In this document: positions 54,886 through 64,000 of the stretch, piece by piece
How the letters are laid out: every line of letters begins with the position of its first letter
Position numbering within the stretch: the first letter of the stretch is position 1
Translations under genes and position numbers: made by a program
The notes under the pieces: generated by a model
Seen by the model: the letters and a program-made list of their open reading frames with translations, nothing else
The model's database searches: none
Told to the model about the DNA's origin: nothing
DNA from: Macrostomum hystrix
Taxonomy: Eukaryota > Animalia > Platyhelminthes
Direction: 5' to 3'
Assembly: GCA_950097015.1 (NCBI GenBank)
Contig: CATNEN010000026.1
Coordinates: 1-64,000, forward strand
Length of the DNA stretch: 64,000 nucleotides

Positions 54886-58804
<3,919 letters not shown>

Positions 58805-59233
58805 AACTGTTTCGTATAGTGAAAGTGAAGATCAAGCAATCAGAAAATGCGGTGAATTATCTACTGGATCCGCGGCCTATGGCCTCGACCGGCGCCACCA
58901 CGCGACGGATCGTGTTTCGCGCCAATTTGAATCGCAGTATTCCCTTGGCCTACCGATCCATAGTTATTTTCCATTGTGTGACTCGCACGGAAGTAGTTGG
59001 TGTGCAGGACACGCCTAAATTCATGTTTAGTCATTAAAATCGGTGCATTACGGAGCACTAAAGATCACAAGCCATTGTAATTACTTAATAAATTAGTAAA
59101 ATGTGCTACTGATCCCCGGCACTTAATGTTTTATTACGTATAGCTACGTACTTTCTCAGTTAAGAAACAATAGTTCTTAACTTGAATAGCGACTCTTTAT
59201 ACTCGTATGTCTATGGCTAGATATTGTCTATGG

Positions 59234-59905
59234 CAGGGCTTGCAAACTCATTAGTATGCGGGCCACGGAGAGAACCTAAAAGATGAAAGCGGGCCGCATT
59301 GACTGTAGGAATATGAGAAACGAGAGAGATAAGGCAGGGGGGAGATGAGACACAAGAGATGAGATAGGGGAGAGATGACAAAGGGAAGAGATGAGACGGG
59401 AAAGAGACGGACGGGAAACAGGGGAGATATGAGACACGGGATAGATGAGACACGGGATAGATGAGACACGGGATAGATGAGACACGGGATAGATGAGACA
59501 CGGGATAGATGAGACACGGGATAGATGAGACTCGGGATAGATGAGACACGGGATAGATGAGACTCGGGATAGATGAGACTCGGGATAGATGAGACACGGG
59601 ATAGATGAGACTCGGGATAGATGAGACACGGGATAGATGAGACACGGGATAGATGAGACTCGGGATAGATGAGACTCGGGATAGATGAGACACGGGAGAG
59701 ATGAGACACGGGAGAGATGAGACACGGGATAGATGAGACTCGGGATAGATGAGAAAGGGAAGAGATGAGACCGAGGAGAGATAAGACTCTCAATCTCTAG
59801 ATGAGAGAGATGAGACAGGATGCCATAGGTGTTGGAAGAGGCAACGGGCCGGATTTGGGAGCTTCGAGGGCCGCATCTGGCCCGCGGCCGGAGTTTGCGA
59901 CCTTA
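59234..59905. mobile_element. Probable hAT-like non-autonomous element containing a 16-bp minisatellite (ATGAGACWCGGGATAG, ~59430-59790)
   Basis: Ends CAGGGCTTGCAAACTC and (reverse complement) TAAGGTCGCAAACTC with GGGCCG subterminal motifs. No TSD found. The repeat itself is certain. Confidence 0.5.
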
Positions 59906-60316
59906 TACCTGGTACCTGGTCAGTGGTATCACATCGTATTTTAATGCATTGTTAAATGCAAAGGTATGGCACCTACGCGAGAAATAAAAATATTACAATT
60001 CTTAACTTTGCACAGTCCACAACTGAGAAAAGTAAAGTTAACGCAGCTTGTTTGATGCGAAAGCATTTAGACAAGGCAAACAGAACCGGCTCGGCTGGAC
60101 ATAAGCCAGAGTAACAAACTGAGGTTAAGACACTGCTCTCATGCAGGCTCAATATGTCAATCATACCTTTGTCTAACAAAAATTCTAGTGAAAAAAATGG
60201 ACGTAATACATTAGTCAGGACCCTTTGAAAACAGATTACTAAGCTGTGTAATCAATGTCATCGGCCGGTTCTCTGCAGCTCAAACAATGACCGGAAACAC
60301 GTGCAACTGACTCGGC

Positions 60317-60322
60317 TATAAA
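60317..60322 (+). promoter_or_regulatory. TATA box of the small secreted-peptide gene
   Basis: TATAAA 104 bp upstream of the ATG at 60421, preceded by CACGTG and TGACTC motifs. Confidence 0.6.
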
Positions 60323-60420
60323 TTCGGAGCTCCCGACTCTACAAGGAGGACAATTCAACGACTAACAGTCAAACACAGACTCCCAGCCTCATCAAGAGAC
60401 AACTCAGACCCGACTCAATC

Positions 60421-60651
60421 ATGAAGTGGCAGCTCGCTCTCGGACTCCTGCTGTGCGCCGCCCTGGTCGCCGCCAGGCCCAATCAGGAGGCGGAGGAGGC
60501 GGACACCCTGGCCGCCCTGGAGGCCCTGTCCAACATCGAGGGTCTGTCGGACGAGGGAGCCGTGCACCTGGCCAAGAAGGGCATCCGCGTCAGGAAGGTC
60601 ATCCGCGTCATCAGGAACATCAAGGATGTCGCTGGCGCCATCGCCAACTAA
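60421..60651 (+). CDS. Single-exon 76-aa prepropeptide: signal peptide, acidic propiece, KK, then a 23-aa cationic amphipathic peptide (putative antimicrobial peptide)
   Basis: MKWQLALGLLLCAALVAA | RPNQEAEEADTLAALEALSNIEGLSDEGAVHLAKK | GIRVRKVIRVIRNIKDVAGAIAN*. Strong GC3 codon bias, CAATCATGA start context, upstream TATA box and downstream AATAAA. Confidence 0.85.
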   Translation: MKWQLALGLLLCAALVAARPNQEAEEADTLAALEALSNIEGLSDEGAVHLAKKGIRVRKVIRVIRNIKDVAGAIAN

Positions 60652-60820
60652 AGATCTTGACTTCAACTTGCTGACTTGACATTGAACAGACCGAAAAGCG
60701 CTGGACTCAACTAAGCTCCCATAATGTACTCATTTGAATTTACTAGCGAAATACTGTACCTAAGAGCTCTGCCTTCAAGTACCTCCTAAGCTTCCACCAA
60801 GCTAAAAACATCGTTGGAAT

Positions 60821-60826
60821 AATAAA
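60821..60826 (+). terminator. Polyadenylation signal AATAAA for the peptide gene
   Basis: 170 bp after the stop codon, followed by a T/GT-rich downstream element. Confidence 0.6.
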
Positions 60827-60940
60827 TAACTTAAAATTAATTCTTACCAGCAATAATTGTTTTTATTACTATTAGTTGTATTTTGTTTTTTTCAGTATCT
60901 GGGCTTGTCTACGTAAGTTTTCGCTGACTAAAAAAATAAC

Positions 60941-61289
60941 AATAATAATAATAATAATAATAATTGCAGGAGGGCTGGGGGCAATGGCACATTATTCGGT
61001 GACACTAGACCCGCTGCCAGTGAGGCAATTCTGCCCATTTCGCTGATTCCTGAGCACACACGCACTCAGATACCGTACGCAGGTACACGTTCACACAGGT
61101 GTGTACATCTGCCCTGACTTTCTCATCGTCGGGCAGTGTACACTCACTGTGCCTTGGAGGTTGGCCCTTAACGGCCCTCAAAGCCCTCTGTCCGCGGCTG
61201 CGCCCCAAATGAATGTGGCCTCGCCGCGGAATCGAGCCCAGGGACATTAGTGCGAGAGGCAAACGCGTTAACCGTTCTGCCACTCACCC
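60941..61289 (-). mobile_element. tRNA-derived SINE (family 2), full length
   Basis: Reverse complement of the 58190 copy, with an (AAT)n tail on the plus strand and an imperfect TSD. A head-only fragment lies at ~39582-39637. Confidence 0.88.
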
Positions 61290-61825
61290 TAGTTTTCACT
61301 TGACTAGGATTTGAACTTCGGACCTCTCGGTTAGGATTAGCTCTTACCTCTTGGCTCTTACCTCCTTCCATTGGATAAGCATTTGAGACTTAAGCAGTTT
61401 ACAAGAGATTACTCGCACGATTGAGGCTGTTACTTAGATTTCTAAGACAAACATTACAAAAGTTGAAACTGATCATTTAAAATAGTAAATAAAGTGATGC
61501 AAATGAAGAGCTAATTTGAGGTTTTCCTATGGAAAAGTGAGCTTTAAAATACGCATACGCAGATTATGGCGTAAAACTTTATATATTTTATAATGAGAAA
61601 TTTATTACATATTACTAGTACGTGATGTTTAAATTAGGAATATAATACATGATAAAAGACACACAAAAGTAGCATTAGGTAAGGCTGGATCGTAGACAGT
61701 TCTAAACTTATACGCGAGTACAAGCGTACTATGATTCTCACAAGAAATGCTCAGCAGAGACACTCCAGGTACAGCTCCTCTATATTCTTAAATTTGTCAA
61801 TGCCAAGTTAATTTGTTTGCATTTG

Positions 61826-63089
61826 TTATAATTTCTTTCTCCGCCAAGCGTCCGGGCCAATGTCCAATTCGGTGTCTTCGGCATCCGCGTCCGCATCGGT
61901 GACGTCATCGTCAGCTACCTCCTGCTTCATCGCAGCCTTGGCTTCCTGTTTGATGTTAGCCGCCTCTTTAAGAAGCTCGAGTTCATTGAGTCTGTGCCAA
62001 GTCTCCCTGACAAAAATATAGTTTTTCTTAGGTTAGTAAAATTTCTATTACTGTTATCATGTTGTACACGAATATAGACAAGCTGGGCACAGTAACAGAC
62101 AAGTTGTACACAGTTACAGACAAGCTGTACACAACTAAAGACATGCTGTACACAGTTACAGACAAGCTGTACACAGTTACAGACAAGCTGTACACAGTTA
62201 CAGACATGCTGTACACAACTTCAGACATGCTGTACACAGTTACAGACAAGTTGTACACAGTTACAGACAAGCTGTACACAACTTCAGACATGCTGTACAC
62301 AGTTACAGACATGCTGTACACAACTTCAGACATGCTGTACACAGTTACAGACAAGCTGTACACAGTTACAGACATGCTGTACACAACTTCAGACATGCTG
62401 TACACAGTTACAGACATGCTGTACACAGTTACAGACAAGCTGTACACAGTTACAGACAAGCTGTACACAACTTCAGACATGCTGTACACAGTTACAGACA
62501 TGCTGTACACAACTTCAGACATGCTGTACACAGTTACAGATATACAGTACAAATTTACTGTAACGATTTTACCTCTTGATCGGTATTTAAAAATTTCCTA
62601 TCAATTAAGAACAAAATTGTACGAAGTTTATCCTATCCGATTCTGGTCCAAAATACAATCCTTAATCCTTAGTATTATCCTCATGGGATAAGTCGCTTGG
62701 GTCCGCCGCTACCGTTTACGGTTTGGTTTTAGCCATTGAGTTATTCATTCCTTTAATAATTGAGTAATTATCACCGATGATCCCTGTTGGGTCTTGTGGT
62801 AGGCCATTGGGTCTTAGAAGTAGACATTTACATCGCACACCCTTACCAAAATATCAAAATCCCTATGTACTCACTCCTGGGCTATGATCTCCTCTAAATA
62901 GCGGACATTGTCCGCCTCCTCTTCCGCAGCCTCGGCTATTCGATCCGATTCAACCTGGGTGTCGCGCATCTCTTTAGTGAAGAGCTCCAGCTCCTCCTCC
63001 ATCCGGTCTTTGTACGGCACGTGGCGAGCGCGCGCGTCAGCCACTGGATCGTCGAAGAAGCCTTCGGGTAGCTGCTGCTGCTTCTGCTT
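61826..63089 (-). CDS. ZNF830: ZNF830/CCDC16-like, last two coding exons; complement join(63089..62875,62006..61826); 5' part lies beyond the window
   Basis: LPEGFFDDPVADARAR..KDRMEEELELFTKEMR..EEIIAQ and the C-terminal DAWRRKKL* match the ZNF830 C-terminal domain. Splice phases agree. Confidence 0.85.
62080..62545. repeat. 21-bp minisatellite (ACAGACAWGCTGTACACAGTT), ~22 copies
   Basis: Read directly; last ZNF830 intron. Confidence 0.93.
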
Positions 63090-63183: not shown

Positions 63184-64000
63184 CGAACCTGAAGGGATCT
63201 GAGTGGTGGAACCTGAAGGGATCTGAGTGGTGGAACCTGAAGGGATCTGAGTGGTGAAGAACCTGAAGGGATCTGAGTGGTGAAGAACCTGAAGGGATCT
63301 GAGTGGTGGAACCTGAAGGGATCTGAGTGGTGGAACCTGAAGGGATCTGAGTGGTGAAGAACCTGAAGGGATCTGAGTGGTGAAGAACCTGAAGGGATCT
63401 GAGTGGTGGAACCTGAAGGGATCTGGGTGGTGGAACCTGAAGGGATCTGAGTGGTGGAACCTGAAGGGATCTGGGTGGTGGAACCTGAAGGGATCTGGGT
63501 GGTGAAGAAACTGAAGGGATCTGAGTGGTGAAGAAACTGAAGGGATCTGAGTGGTGAAGAACCTGAAGGGATCTGGGTGGTGAAGAACCTGAAGGGATCT
63601 GAGTGGTGGAACCTGAAGGGATCTGAGTGGTGGAACCTGAAGGGATCTGAGTGGTGAAGAACCTGAAGGGATCTGAGTGGTGAAGAAACTGAAGGGATCT
63701 GGGTGGTGAAGAAACTGAAGGGATCTGAGTGGTGAAGAACCTGAAGGGATCTGGGTGGTGAAGAAACTGAAGGGATCTGGGTGGTGAAGAACCTGAAGGG
63801 ATCTGGGTGGTGAAGAACCTGAAGGGATCTGGGTGGTGAAGAACCTGAAGGGATCTGAGTGGTGAAGAACCTGAAGGGATCTGGGTGGTGAAGAAACTGA
63901 AGGGATCTGGGTGGTGAAGAACCTGAAGGGATCTGAGTGGTGAAGAACCTGAAGGGATCTGAGTGGTGAAGAACCTGAAGGGATCTGAGTGGTGAAAAAC
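63184..64000. repeat. 24/26-bp minisatellite (GAACCTGAAGGGATCTGRGTGGTG[AA]) running off the end of the window
   Basis: Read directly; the mixed unit lengths argue against coding; ZNF830 intron. Confidence 0.93.

Follow-up and report, generated by a model that had tools for sequence, protein, structure and literature searches.

The 64,000 nucleotides of Macrostomum hystrix DNA analyzed here, referred to as the window, contain a short intronless gene that is very strongly transcribed and encodes the precursor of a putatively secreted peptide. It is one of more than 50 related genes which, on balance, we take to form an undescribed, Macrostomum-restricted family of host-defense-type secreted peptides. 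A host-defense peptide had been predicted earlier from this gene taken by itself. That reading has been strengthened by the conservation of signal and propiece alongside highly variable tails, the charge balance between precursor parts, the amidation signals, and the level of expression. The accompanying view of a single, missed gene had to be given up, as the genome holds at least 56 family matches.

A compact gene and its predicted precursor

The gene consists of one unbroken ATG-to-TAA reading frame of 76 codons on the forward strand, whose product divides into a hydrophobic leader, an acidic propiece closing on two lysines, and a C-terminal tail (Table 1). Its GC content is 67% overall and 0.91 at third codon positions (GC3), compared to 0.454 (45%) for the whole window, while the flanks of the frame range from 0.34 to 0.42. 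The original prediction had described a 76-residue, single-exon gene with strongly biased codons, a TATA box and a poly(A) signal, encoding an 18-residue signal, a 35-residue propiece with eight acidic residues that ends in KK, and a 23-mer with six R/K, one D and a net charge of about +5. TATAAA and AATAAA could both be located, the codon bias is evident, and all residue counts agree. The layout is, as had been proposed, that of antimicrobial peptide precursors: the signal is followed by an acidic propiece, which leads over a dibasic site to a cationic peptide at the C-terminus. Since the frame is continuous and the RNA contigs are colinear with the DNA, the gene is intronless. An open reading frame on the opposite strand (60415-60666) was ruled out, as the forward strand is the one that agrees with the promoter, with the poly(A) signal and with the conservation seen in the family.

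Table 1 Features of the peptide gene and its surroundings, in window positions.
Feature	Position	Strand	Description
Ammonium transporter exons	56379-58136	-	PF00909, E = 1.9e-32 and 6e-19
Upstream motif CGGAAACACGTG	60292-60303	+	Family-specific; 13 nt before the TATA box
TATA box	60317-60322	+	TATAAA; 104 nt 5' of the ATG
Predicted 5'UTR	60347-60420	+	Start inferred: near-identity among subfamily paralogues begins at GGACAATTC
Open reading frame	60421-60651	+	76 codons, 76 residues
Predicted signal peptide	60421-60474	+	Residues 1-18, MKWQLALGLLLCAALVAA; hydrophobic leader ending V-A-A
Acidic propiece	60475-60579	+	Residues 19-53, 35 residues, 8 D/E, C-terminal KK
KK, predicted convertase site	60574-60579	+	Residues 52-53, invariant in the family
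18-nt tandem duplication	60576-60610	+	In the mature-peptide coding part; unit K-G/V-I-R-V-R/I
Predicted mature 23-mer	60580-60648	+	Residues 54-76, GIRVRKVIRVIRNIKDVAGAIAN
Stop codon	60649-60651	+	TAA
3'UTR	60652-60852	+	Unique to the window copy; transcript end at about 60850-60852
Poly(A) signal	60821-60826	+	AATAAA

The signal cleavage site was placed after Ala18 by hand, using only the -3/-1 rule. The predicted mature peptide is 52% hydrophobic, and its size (within 10-50 residues), cationic charge and amphipathicity are those expected of a mature antimicrobial peptide. At 100 degrees its hydrophobic moment amounts to 0.40 on the Fauchere-Pliska and 0.49 on the Eisenberg scale, close to the value that the same computation returns for melittin. 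Between 5 and 7% of shuffled 23-mers reach the observed moment (5% for the Fauchere-Pliska value of 0.40), so the amphipathicity is genuine, yet modest when set against the shuffles. The predicted spacing of hydrophobic residues as for an amphipathic helix thus stands, at a level moderately above shuffled sequences. AlphaFold2, supplied with the family alignment, places helices at residues 3-17, 26-37 and 50-75; since the mean pLDDT is just 60.6, the helix over residues 50-75 counts as weak support.

The window copy ends in AIAN followed directly by the stop codon. It lacks the C-terminal Gly used for amidation, and the predicted 23-mer would consequently not be amidated. The tandem duplication within the tail (period 18, 1.9 copies, 94% match in Tandem Repeats Finder) suggests that tails may lengthen through duplication of short hydrophobic-Arg units.

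With respect to its surroundings, the gene is a dispersed single copy located between an ammonium-transporter gene and satellite arrays near the contig end. The transporter exons lie upstream, which makes the peptide gene intergenic and not nested. The end of the window is rich in satellites, with tandem arrays of period 21 nt and 26 nt at 62058-62558 and 63185-64000. Another array at 59339-59787 has a 16-nt unit, ACACGGGATAGATGAG, in about 23-28 copies; it reaches a depth of up to about 130,000 in the RNA-type runs and produces long artefactual minus-strand reading frames. Directly 3' of the gene lies a repeat-like block (60989-61339), whose contigs in the RNA-type runs have depths of thousands and numerous internal joints; it probably represents a transcribed repeat dispersed in the genome.

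Transcription of the window copy

Four public sequencing runs were compared over positions 59000-62500, three of which belong to one study (X12-14). The contigs of these three span 60404-60852 and leave the unique flanks empty; depth is zero at 59936-60403 and again at 60872-60988. Two contigs match the window exactly, one at 60578-60852 (X12, depth 2819) and one at 60590-60850 (X13, depth 1810). They end about 25-30 nt past the AATAAA, and the X13 contig runs into Illumina adapter sequence after position 60850. The 3'UTR of the window copy cannot be aligned to those of its paralogues, and the stretch 60655-60852 occurs a single time in the 220-Mb genome. As this stretch is single-copy, the exact contigs come from the window copy itself. 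A lack of transcripts had been named in advance as grounds for abandoning the prediction; instead, the gene is represented at depths of about 1800-2800.

The next expressed block, 61627-62006, belongs to the neighboring gene and shows a depth of 23-33, which is about 100-fold below that of the peptide gene. The ratio between the two is alike across three separate samples. A gap of this size between two single-copy stretches, together with the empty flanks, identifies the runs as RNA and the expression as very strong; that X12-14 might be DNA runs was ruled out on these grounds. The majority of the depth at position 60607 shows the base that the paralogues have, so the sister copies are expressed too.

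At the 5' end, contigs of X12-14 are missing from the part of the predicted 5'UTR at 60347-60403, and an AG dinucleotide stands at 60406-60407. This may be due to spliced-leader trans-splicing, to a transcription start further downstream, or to an interruption of the assembly graph. In M. lignano a colinear 5'UTR similar to window positions 60347-60420 is read in frame by the gene models.

A gene family under one promoter module

A six-frame search of the M. hystrix genome returned 52 matches with the window protein and 56 with the family profile, of which one has an internal stop. This corresponds to at least 56 matches and more than 50 genes. The window protein itself matches the profile with E = 1.2e-31 and aligns over its full length. 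Paralogues with a conserved signal and propiece and a variable mature part, for which the original prediction had proposed to look, are thus abundant.

From this genome, 31 distinct full-length precursors were taken. All of them begin with the leader M(K/R)WQ(L/F)ALGLLLCAAL, the almost invariant family signal being MKWQLALGLLLCAAL, and continue with an acidic propiece that contains LEAL and ends in an invariant KK. The window protein shares the leader, the LEAL-containing propiece, and the KK followed by a basic tail with this MKWQ-leader family. In an alignment of 32 sequences that includes two species, M1, W3, Q4, L7 to A13, L33, E34, K52 and K53 do not vary.

Copies are clustered on contig C26 (1.14-1.21 Mb and 1.435-1.446 Mb) and on C1 (16.87-16.90 Mb), with further copies on C3, C5, C27, C28, C39, C2 and C10. 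Mirror-image pairs are frequent. At C1:16871843-16879234, for example, the copies form a nested palindrome (minus A, plus B, minus B, plus A) in which the two proteins of each pair are identical; similar mirror pairs are found on C5, C3 and C27.

Among paralogues the similarity sets in sharply some 130 nt 5' of the ATG and extends as far as the stop codon, while 3'UTRs and farther flanks are unrelated. The shared upstream part includes a module, CGGAAA(A/C)ACGTG, placed 12-24 nt before a TATA-like box and found in the window at 60292-60323. The motif CGGAAACACGTG combines an ETS-like GGAA core with an ACGTG core, and nearly all paralogues carry a (T/C)ATAAA or ATATAT box at the equivalent position. 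How specific is this arrangement? The pattern CGGAAAMACGTG-N12-24-ATAWAW has 29 matches in the 220-Mb genome and none in a reversed control, and 28 of the 29 lie just 5' of family genes, in all subfamilies. The remaining match, C39:1877883, is located in AT-rich DNA without a downstream reading frame and was taken as chance. The module recurs at equal spacing before a family member of M. lignano, in locus L041 (5889-5920), and in a third source before a member on L042, a contig of another sequencing run.

Conserved leaders and variable tails

Crude pairwise Nei-Gojobori estimates over all 31 sequences yielded a dN of 0.054 and a dN/dS of 0.18 for the signal, 0.24 and 0.58 for the propiece, and 0.61 and 0.85 for the tail. 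Divergence therefore increases from signal to propiece to tail: the leader is conserved and the product is variable. As the dN/dS of the tail, at 0.85, stays below 1, we do not claim positive selection. Judged from these sequences, the rate pattern is that of the defense peptides of frogs, mussels and Hydra and the reverse of that of neuropeptide genes.

Within the genome the tails fall into the type of the window copy (GIRVRKVIR...), a FRLIRAVRT... type, and short 14-mers. Many are rich in Arg, Trp and Tyr and 22-31 residues long, and distant members have weakly charged tails. The tail classes, namely amphipathic helices, Arg/Trp/Tyr-rich stretches, alternating V/R, His-rich sequences and Pro/Arg repeats, are typical of antimicrobial peptides. 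Charge is distributed over the precursor in a characteristic manner. In the 31 sequences the propiece without its KK carries a net charge of -7 to -14 and the tail one of +3 to +12, and the two are correlated with r = -0.87, a value obtained from related sequences in few clades, for which a p-value would carry no meaning. The trend is also present within the large Arg-rich clade. Such mirroring is what is predicted by a model in which the acidic piece neutralizes a toxic tail.

Signals for further processing are common as well. While the window copy has none, 25 of the 31 distinct tails end in Gly or in Gly followed by K/R; the sibling tail GIRVRKVIRIIRNVKDVAGAVA, for instance, is predicted to belong to the amidated type. 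The genome also carries copper-monooxygenase (PHM-type) domains and proprotein-convertase P-domains. A point against the predicted cleavage is that KK is a rarer convertase site than KR or RR.

Some distant members depart from this picture in their tails. L047, L049 (C10:2937041-2940238) and the M. lignano protein P0016 keep the leader and the KK, and their tails are weakly charged or non-cationic (NWADLVARILGS..., AVYKPNYYKD). Not every member is hence a classical cationic peptide.

Taxonomic range

A word-based protein search identified nine relatives, all of them "hypothetical proteins" of M. lignano. When all of 1.84 billion representative proteins were searched with the family profile, 12 were identified, again all from M. 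lignano except for one contig from run SRR31628392, in line with the lineage-specific peptide that had been predicted. A collection of 15 billion proteins does not contain the window protein in its exact form. The long Arg-rich class is recognizably common to both species, tail included, whereas no obvious M. lignano equivalent of the window copy's tail type was present among the matches. In two M. lignano models a family member is fused to unrelated proteins. The public models P0015 and P0002 show a fusion to a 560-residue Sushi-domain protein or bear the label SERPIN domain-containing, both of which are probably annotation artefacts. With public relatives either called hypothetical or mis-fused and the window protein itself absent, the family is effectively unannotated.

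The original prediction had also considered that a match to a known neuropeptide or structural protein would speak against it. For the window protein, hmmscan against Pfam-A reported no family at E up to 10, and a sequence search of the PDB returned nothing below E = 0.59. A marginal match of the M. lignano protein P0004 to PF22991 was rejected, being due to a duplicated acidic stretch. The nearest language-model neighbors are the frog bombinin, dermaseptin, temporin and brevinin precursors at 0.76-0.81, which is below the level of evidence and serves as a lead only. In the full-text literature the leader string, the tail strings and 18 M. lignano gene identifiers had no match, and the supplements of PMC10414684 (one of them covered in part), PMC5816591 and PMC5730564 contained no family member; the sole identifier match, in PMC5816591, is the PRPF19 gene and not a member. 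Small k-mer shares were detected in sediment and wastewater metatranscriptomes.

Alternative roles

What else could such a family do? One alternative, which we regard as improbable, is that the peptides are secreted in reproduction, into seminal fluid, prostate, gonad or egg coat, and that sexual conflict between these hermaphroditic worms, not microbes, drives the fast evolution of their tails. A lineage-specific expansion with variable tails would fit this explanation too, and rapid evolution of reproduction-related genes has been documented in Macrostomum (PMC7336406). Against it stand the charge-balanced propieces and the Arg/Trp-rich, predicted amidated tails, which are typical of cytotoxic peptides, as well as a depth relative to the neighboring gene that is alike in three separate samples, whose stages are not stated. 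A reproductive site of action would in any case not exclude antimicrobial action.

We assign a similarly small probability to the idea that the products are toxins or secretory-granule cargo directed against eukaryotes, be it prey or predators, or structural or adhesive parts of epidermal gland secretions such as those of rhabdites and the adhesive-release system. Very high expression from many copies would suit bulk gland products, and the alternating V/R tails of M. lignano could self-assemble. Spider and hymenopteran venom peptides also come from precursors with a signal, an acidic propiece and a cationic lytic peptide. However, the diatom-feeding Macrostomum worms are not known to have a venom apparatus, and the sequence has nothing that would separate a toxin from an antimicrobial use. 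With regard to adhesion, Pfam gave no homology to known flatworm adhesion proteins.

Neuropeptide or hormone precursors, from which amidated peptides are freed at dibasic sites to act on receptors, are less likely still. Dibasic cleavage followed by amidation at Gly is the neuropeptide processing route, some M. lignano tails (P0008, P0009) would end in RF-amide, and a truncated relic in the M. hystrix genome ends in SRYIRFG, which matches the YIRFamide motif of flatworm FMRFamide-like peptides. Hydra moreover has a secreted antibacterial neuropeptide (PMC5614986), so signaling and defense roles can overlap. On the other hand, neuropeptide genes keep the mature part conserved and let the spacers vary, whereas here conservation is lowest in the tail and highest in the leader (dN of 0.61 versus 0.054). 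Copy numbers above 50, tails of 8 to 31 residues with charges of +5 to +12, a single peptide per precursor, a transcript depth about 100 times that of the neighboring gene, and the missing amidation Gly of the window copy likewise argue against this role. The relic itself, L055 (C5:1140178-1141324, locus positions 429-672), has lost signal and promoter to a CACCTCAGCATC-type microsatellite and retains the YIRFamide motif with its amidation Gly. To judge from its sequence, this tail may reflect a neuropeptide origin of the family or may be due to chance.

The lone position of the window copy among satellite arrays, near the contig end and far from the clusters at 1.14-1.45 Mb, might suggest a dead gene or a frame that is open by chance. 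Either has a negligible probability: nothing is disrupted in the reading frame, the promoter motif, the TATA box or the poly(A) signal, exact and deep RNA contigs cover its single-copy 3'UTR, and a frame shared by at least 56 paralogues at a dN/dS below 1 sets it apart from chance.

A putative host-defense system

Host defense is the reading we favor, and it would work as follows. After removal of the signal peptide behind Ala18, the 35-residue acidic propiece would hold the cationic tail in a neutral, harmless state while the precursor is made and stored. A proprotein convertase would then cut after the invariant KK and release a 23-residue, moderately amphipathic helical peptide with a charge of +5. 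In most paralogues the terminal Gly, or Gly plus basic residue, would be trimmed by a carboxypeptidase and amidated by an amidating enzyme, a step that the window copy, having no Gly, would skip. The freed peptides are proposed to act extracellularly, either as membrane-active host-defense agents or in the control of the microbiota. Across the family one cassette for secretion and processing and one promoter module would be retained, while the tails diversify.

A more far-reaching version is conceivable, and we put it forward tentatively. The more than 50 intronless genes would then constitute a genus-wide arsenal with a shared promoter and neutralization cassette, whose tails grow by duplication of units, whose origin possibly lies in an RYIRFamide-type neuropeptide, and whose putative task is to control the microbiota of surface or gut.

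If this broader version is correct, the family would be the first antimicrobial-peptide system described from free-living flatworms. A survey from 2023 noted that the flatworm repertoire of antimicrobial peptides was undescribed and that the classical lophotrochozoan families are missing in flatworms (PMC10414684). As the family is large, extremely highly expressed and so far found only in Macrostomum, and as M. lignano is a model with transgenesis and RNAi, it would offer a direct handle on innate defense and microbiota in flatworms. It would further provide dozens of natural Arg-rich peptide templates. The compact, family-specific promoter module of about 150 bp could drive transgenes strongly and in a cell-type-specific manner.

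Comparison with known peptide systems

The precursors of flatworm FMRFamide-like and other neuropeptides have a signal peptide, dibasic processing and amidation from Gly in common with the Macrostomum family. The family differs from them in its reversed conservation, long polycationic tails, one peptide per precursor and more than 50 genes. Further flatworm candidates are mesco-2 of Mesocestoides corti (PMC11546468) and the fAMP-LPs (PMC10414684), which are small, partly intronless flatworm genes for a signal and a cationic peptide and were likewise mined from genomes. Their peptides have been synthesized and assayed, and their sequences differ from those of the Macrostomum family; the family signal string was not found in the supplements of PMC10414684, one of which was covered in part.

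The frog skin active peptides, with preprodermaseptin as an example (PF03032), show the same order of signal, acidic propiece, dibasic site and variable cationic C-terminal peptide. They also form multigene families, their C-terminus is often amidated via Gly, and their precursors are the top look-alikes according to the language model. The window protein, however, has no match to the FSAP_sig_propep profile (PF03032) in the Pfam-A search at E up to 10. The dibasic site is KK here instead of the KR of the frog peptides, and the window gene is intronless. Frog skin peptide genes have two exons. We regard the resemblance as one in the working of the precursor and not as evidence of descent.

Two further systems come from invertebrates. 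The arminins of Hydra are, as is the Macrostomum family, restricted to a genus and among the top-expressed peptides, and they combine an anionic N-terminal with a cationic C-terminal part. They have been proposed to shape the microbiota (PMC6369191). For arminins, experiments have demonstrated both activity and an influence on the microbiota, whereas the Macrostomum family is known from sequence and transcripts, and the two are unrelated in sequence. The myticalins of Mytilus share with it a conserved signal, a variable, cationic and Arg-rich mature region, a dibasic site and an anionic extension (PMC5577615). Both are taxonomically restricted multigene families, and in both a Gly followed by a basic residue serves for amidation, as predicted in our case. 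The order of the parts is reversed, the anionic extension of myticalins standing behind the mature peptide and the acidic piece of the Macrostomum precursor in front of it; introns are present in myticalin genes and absent from the Macrostomum gene, and the sequences are dissimilar. By its apparent mode of working the Macrostomum family can be likened to the antimicrobial peptide precursors of frogs, Hydra and mussels, while being a member of none of them.
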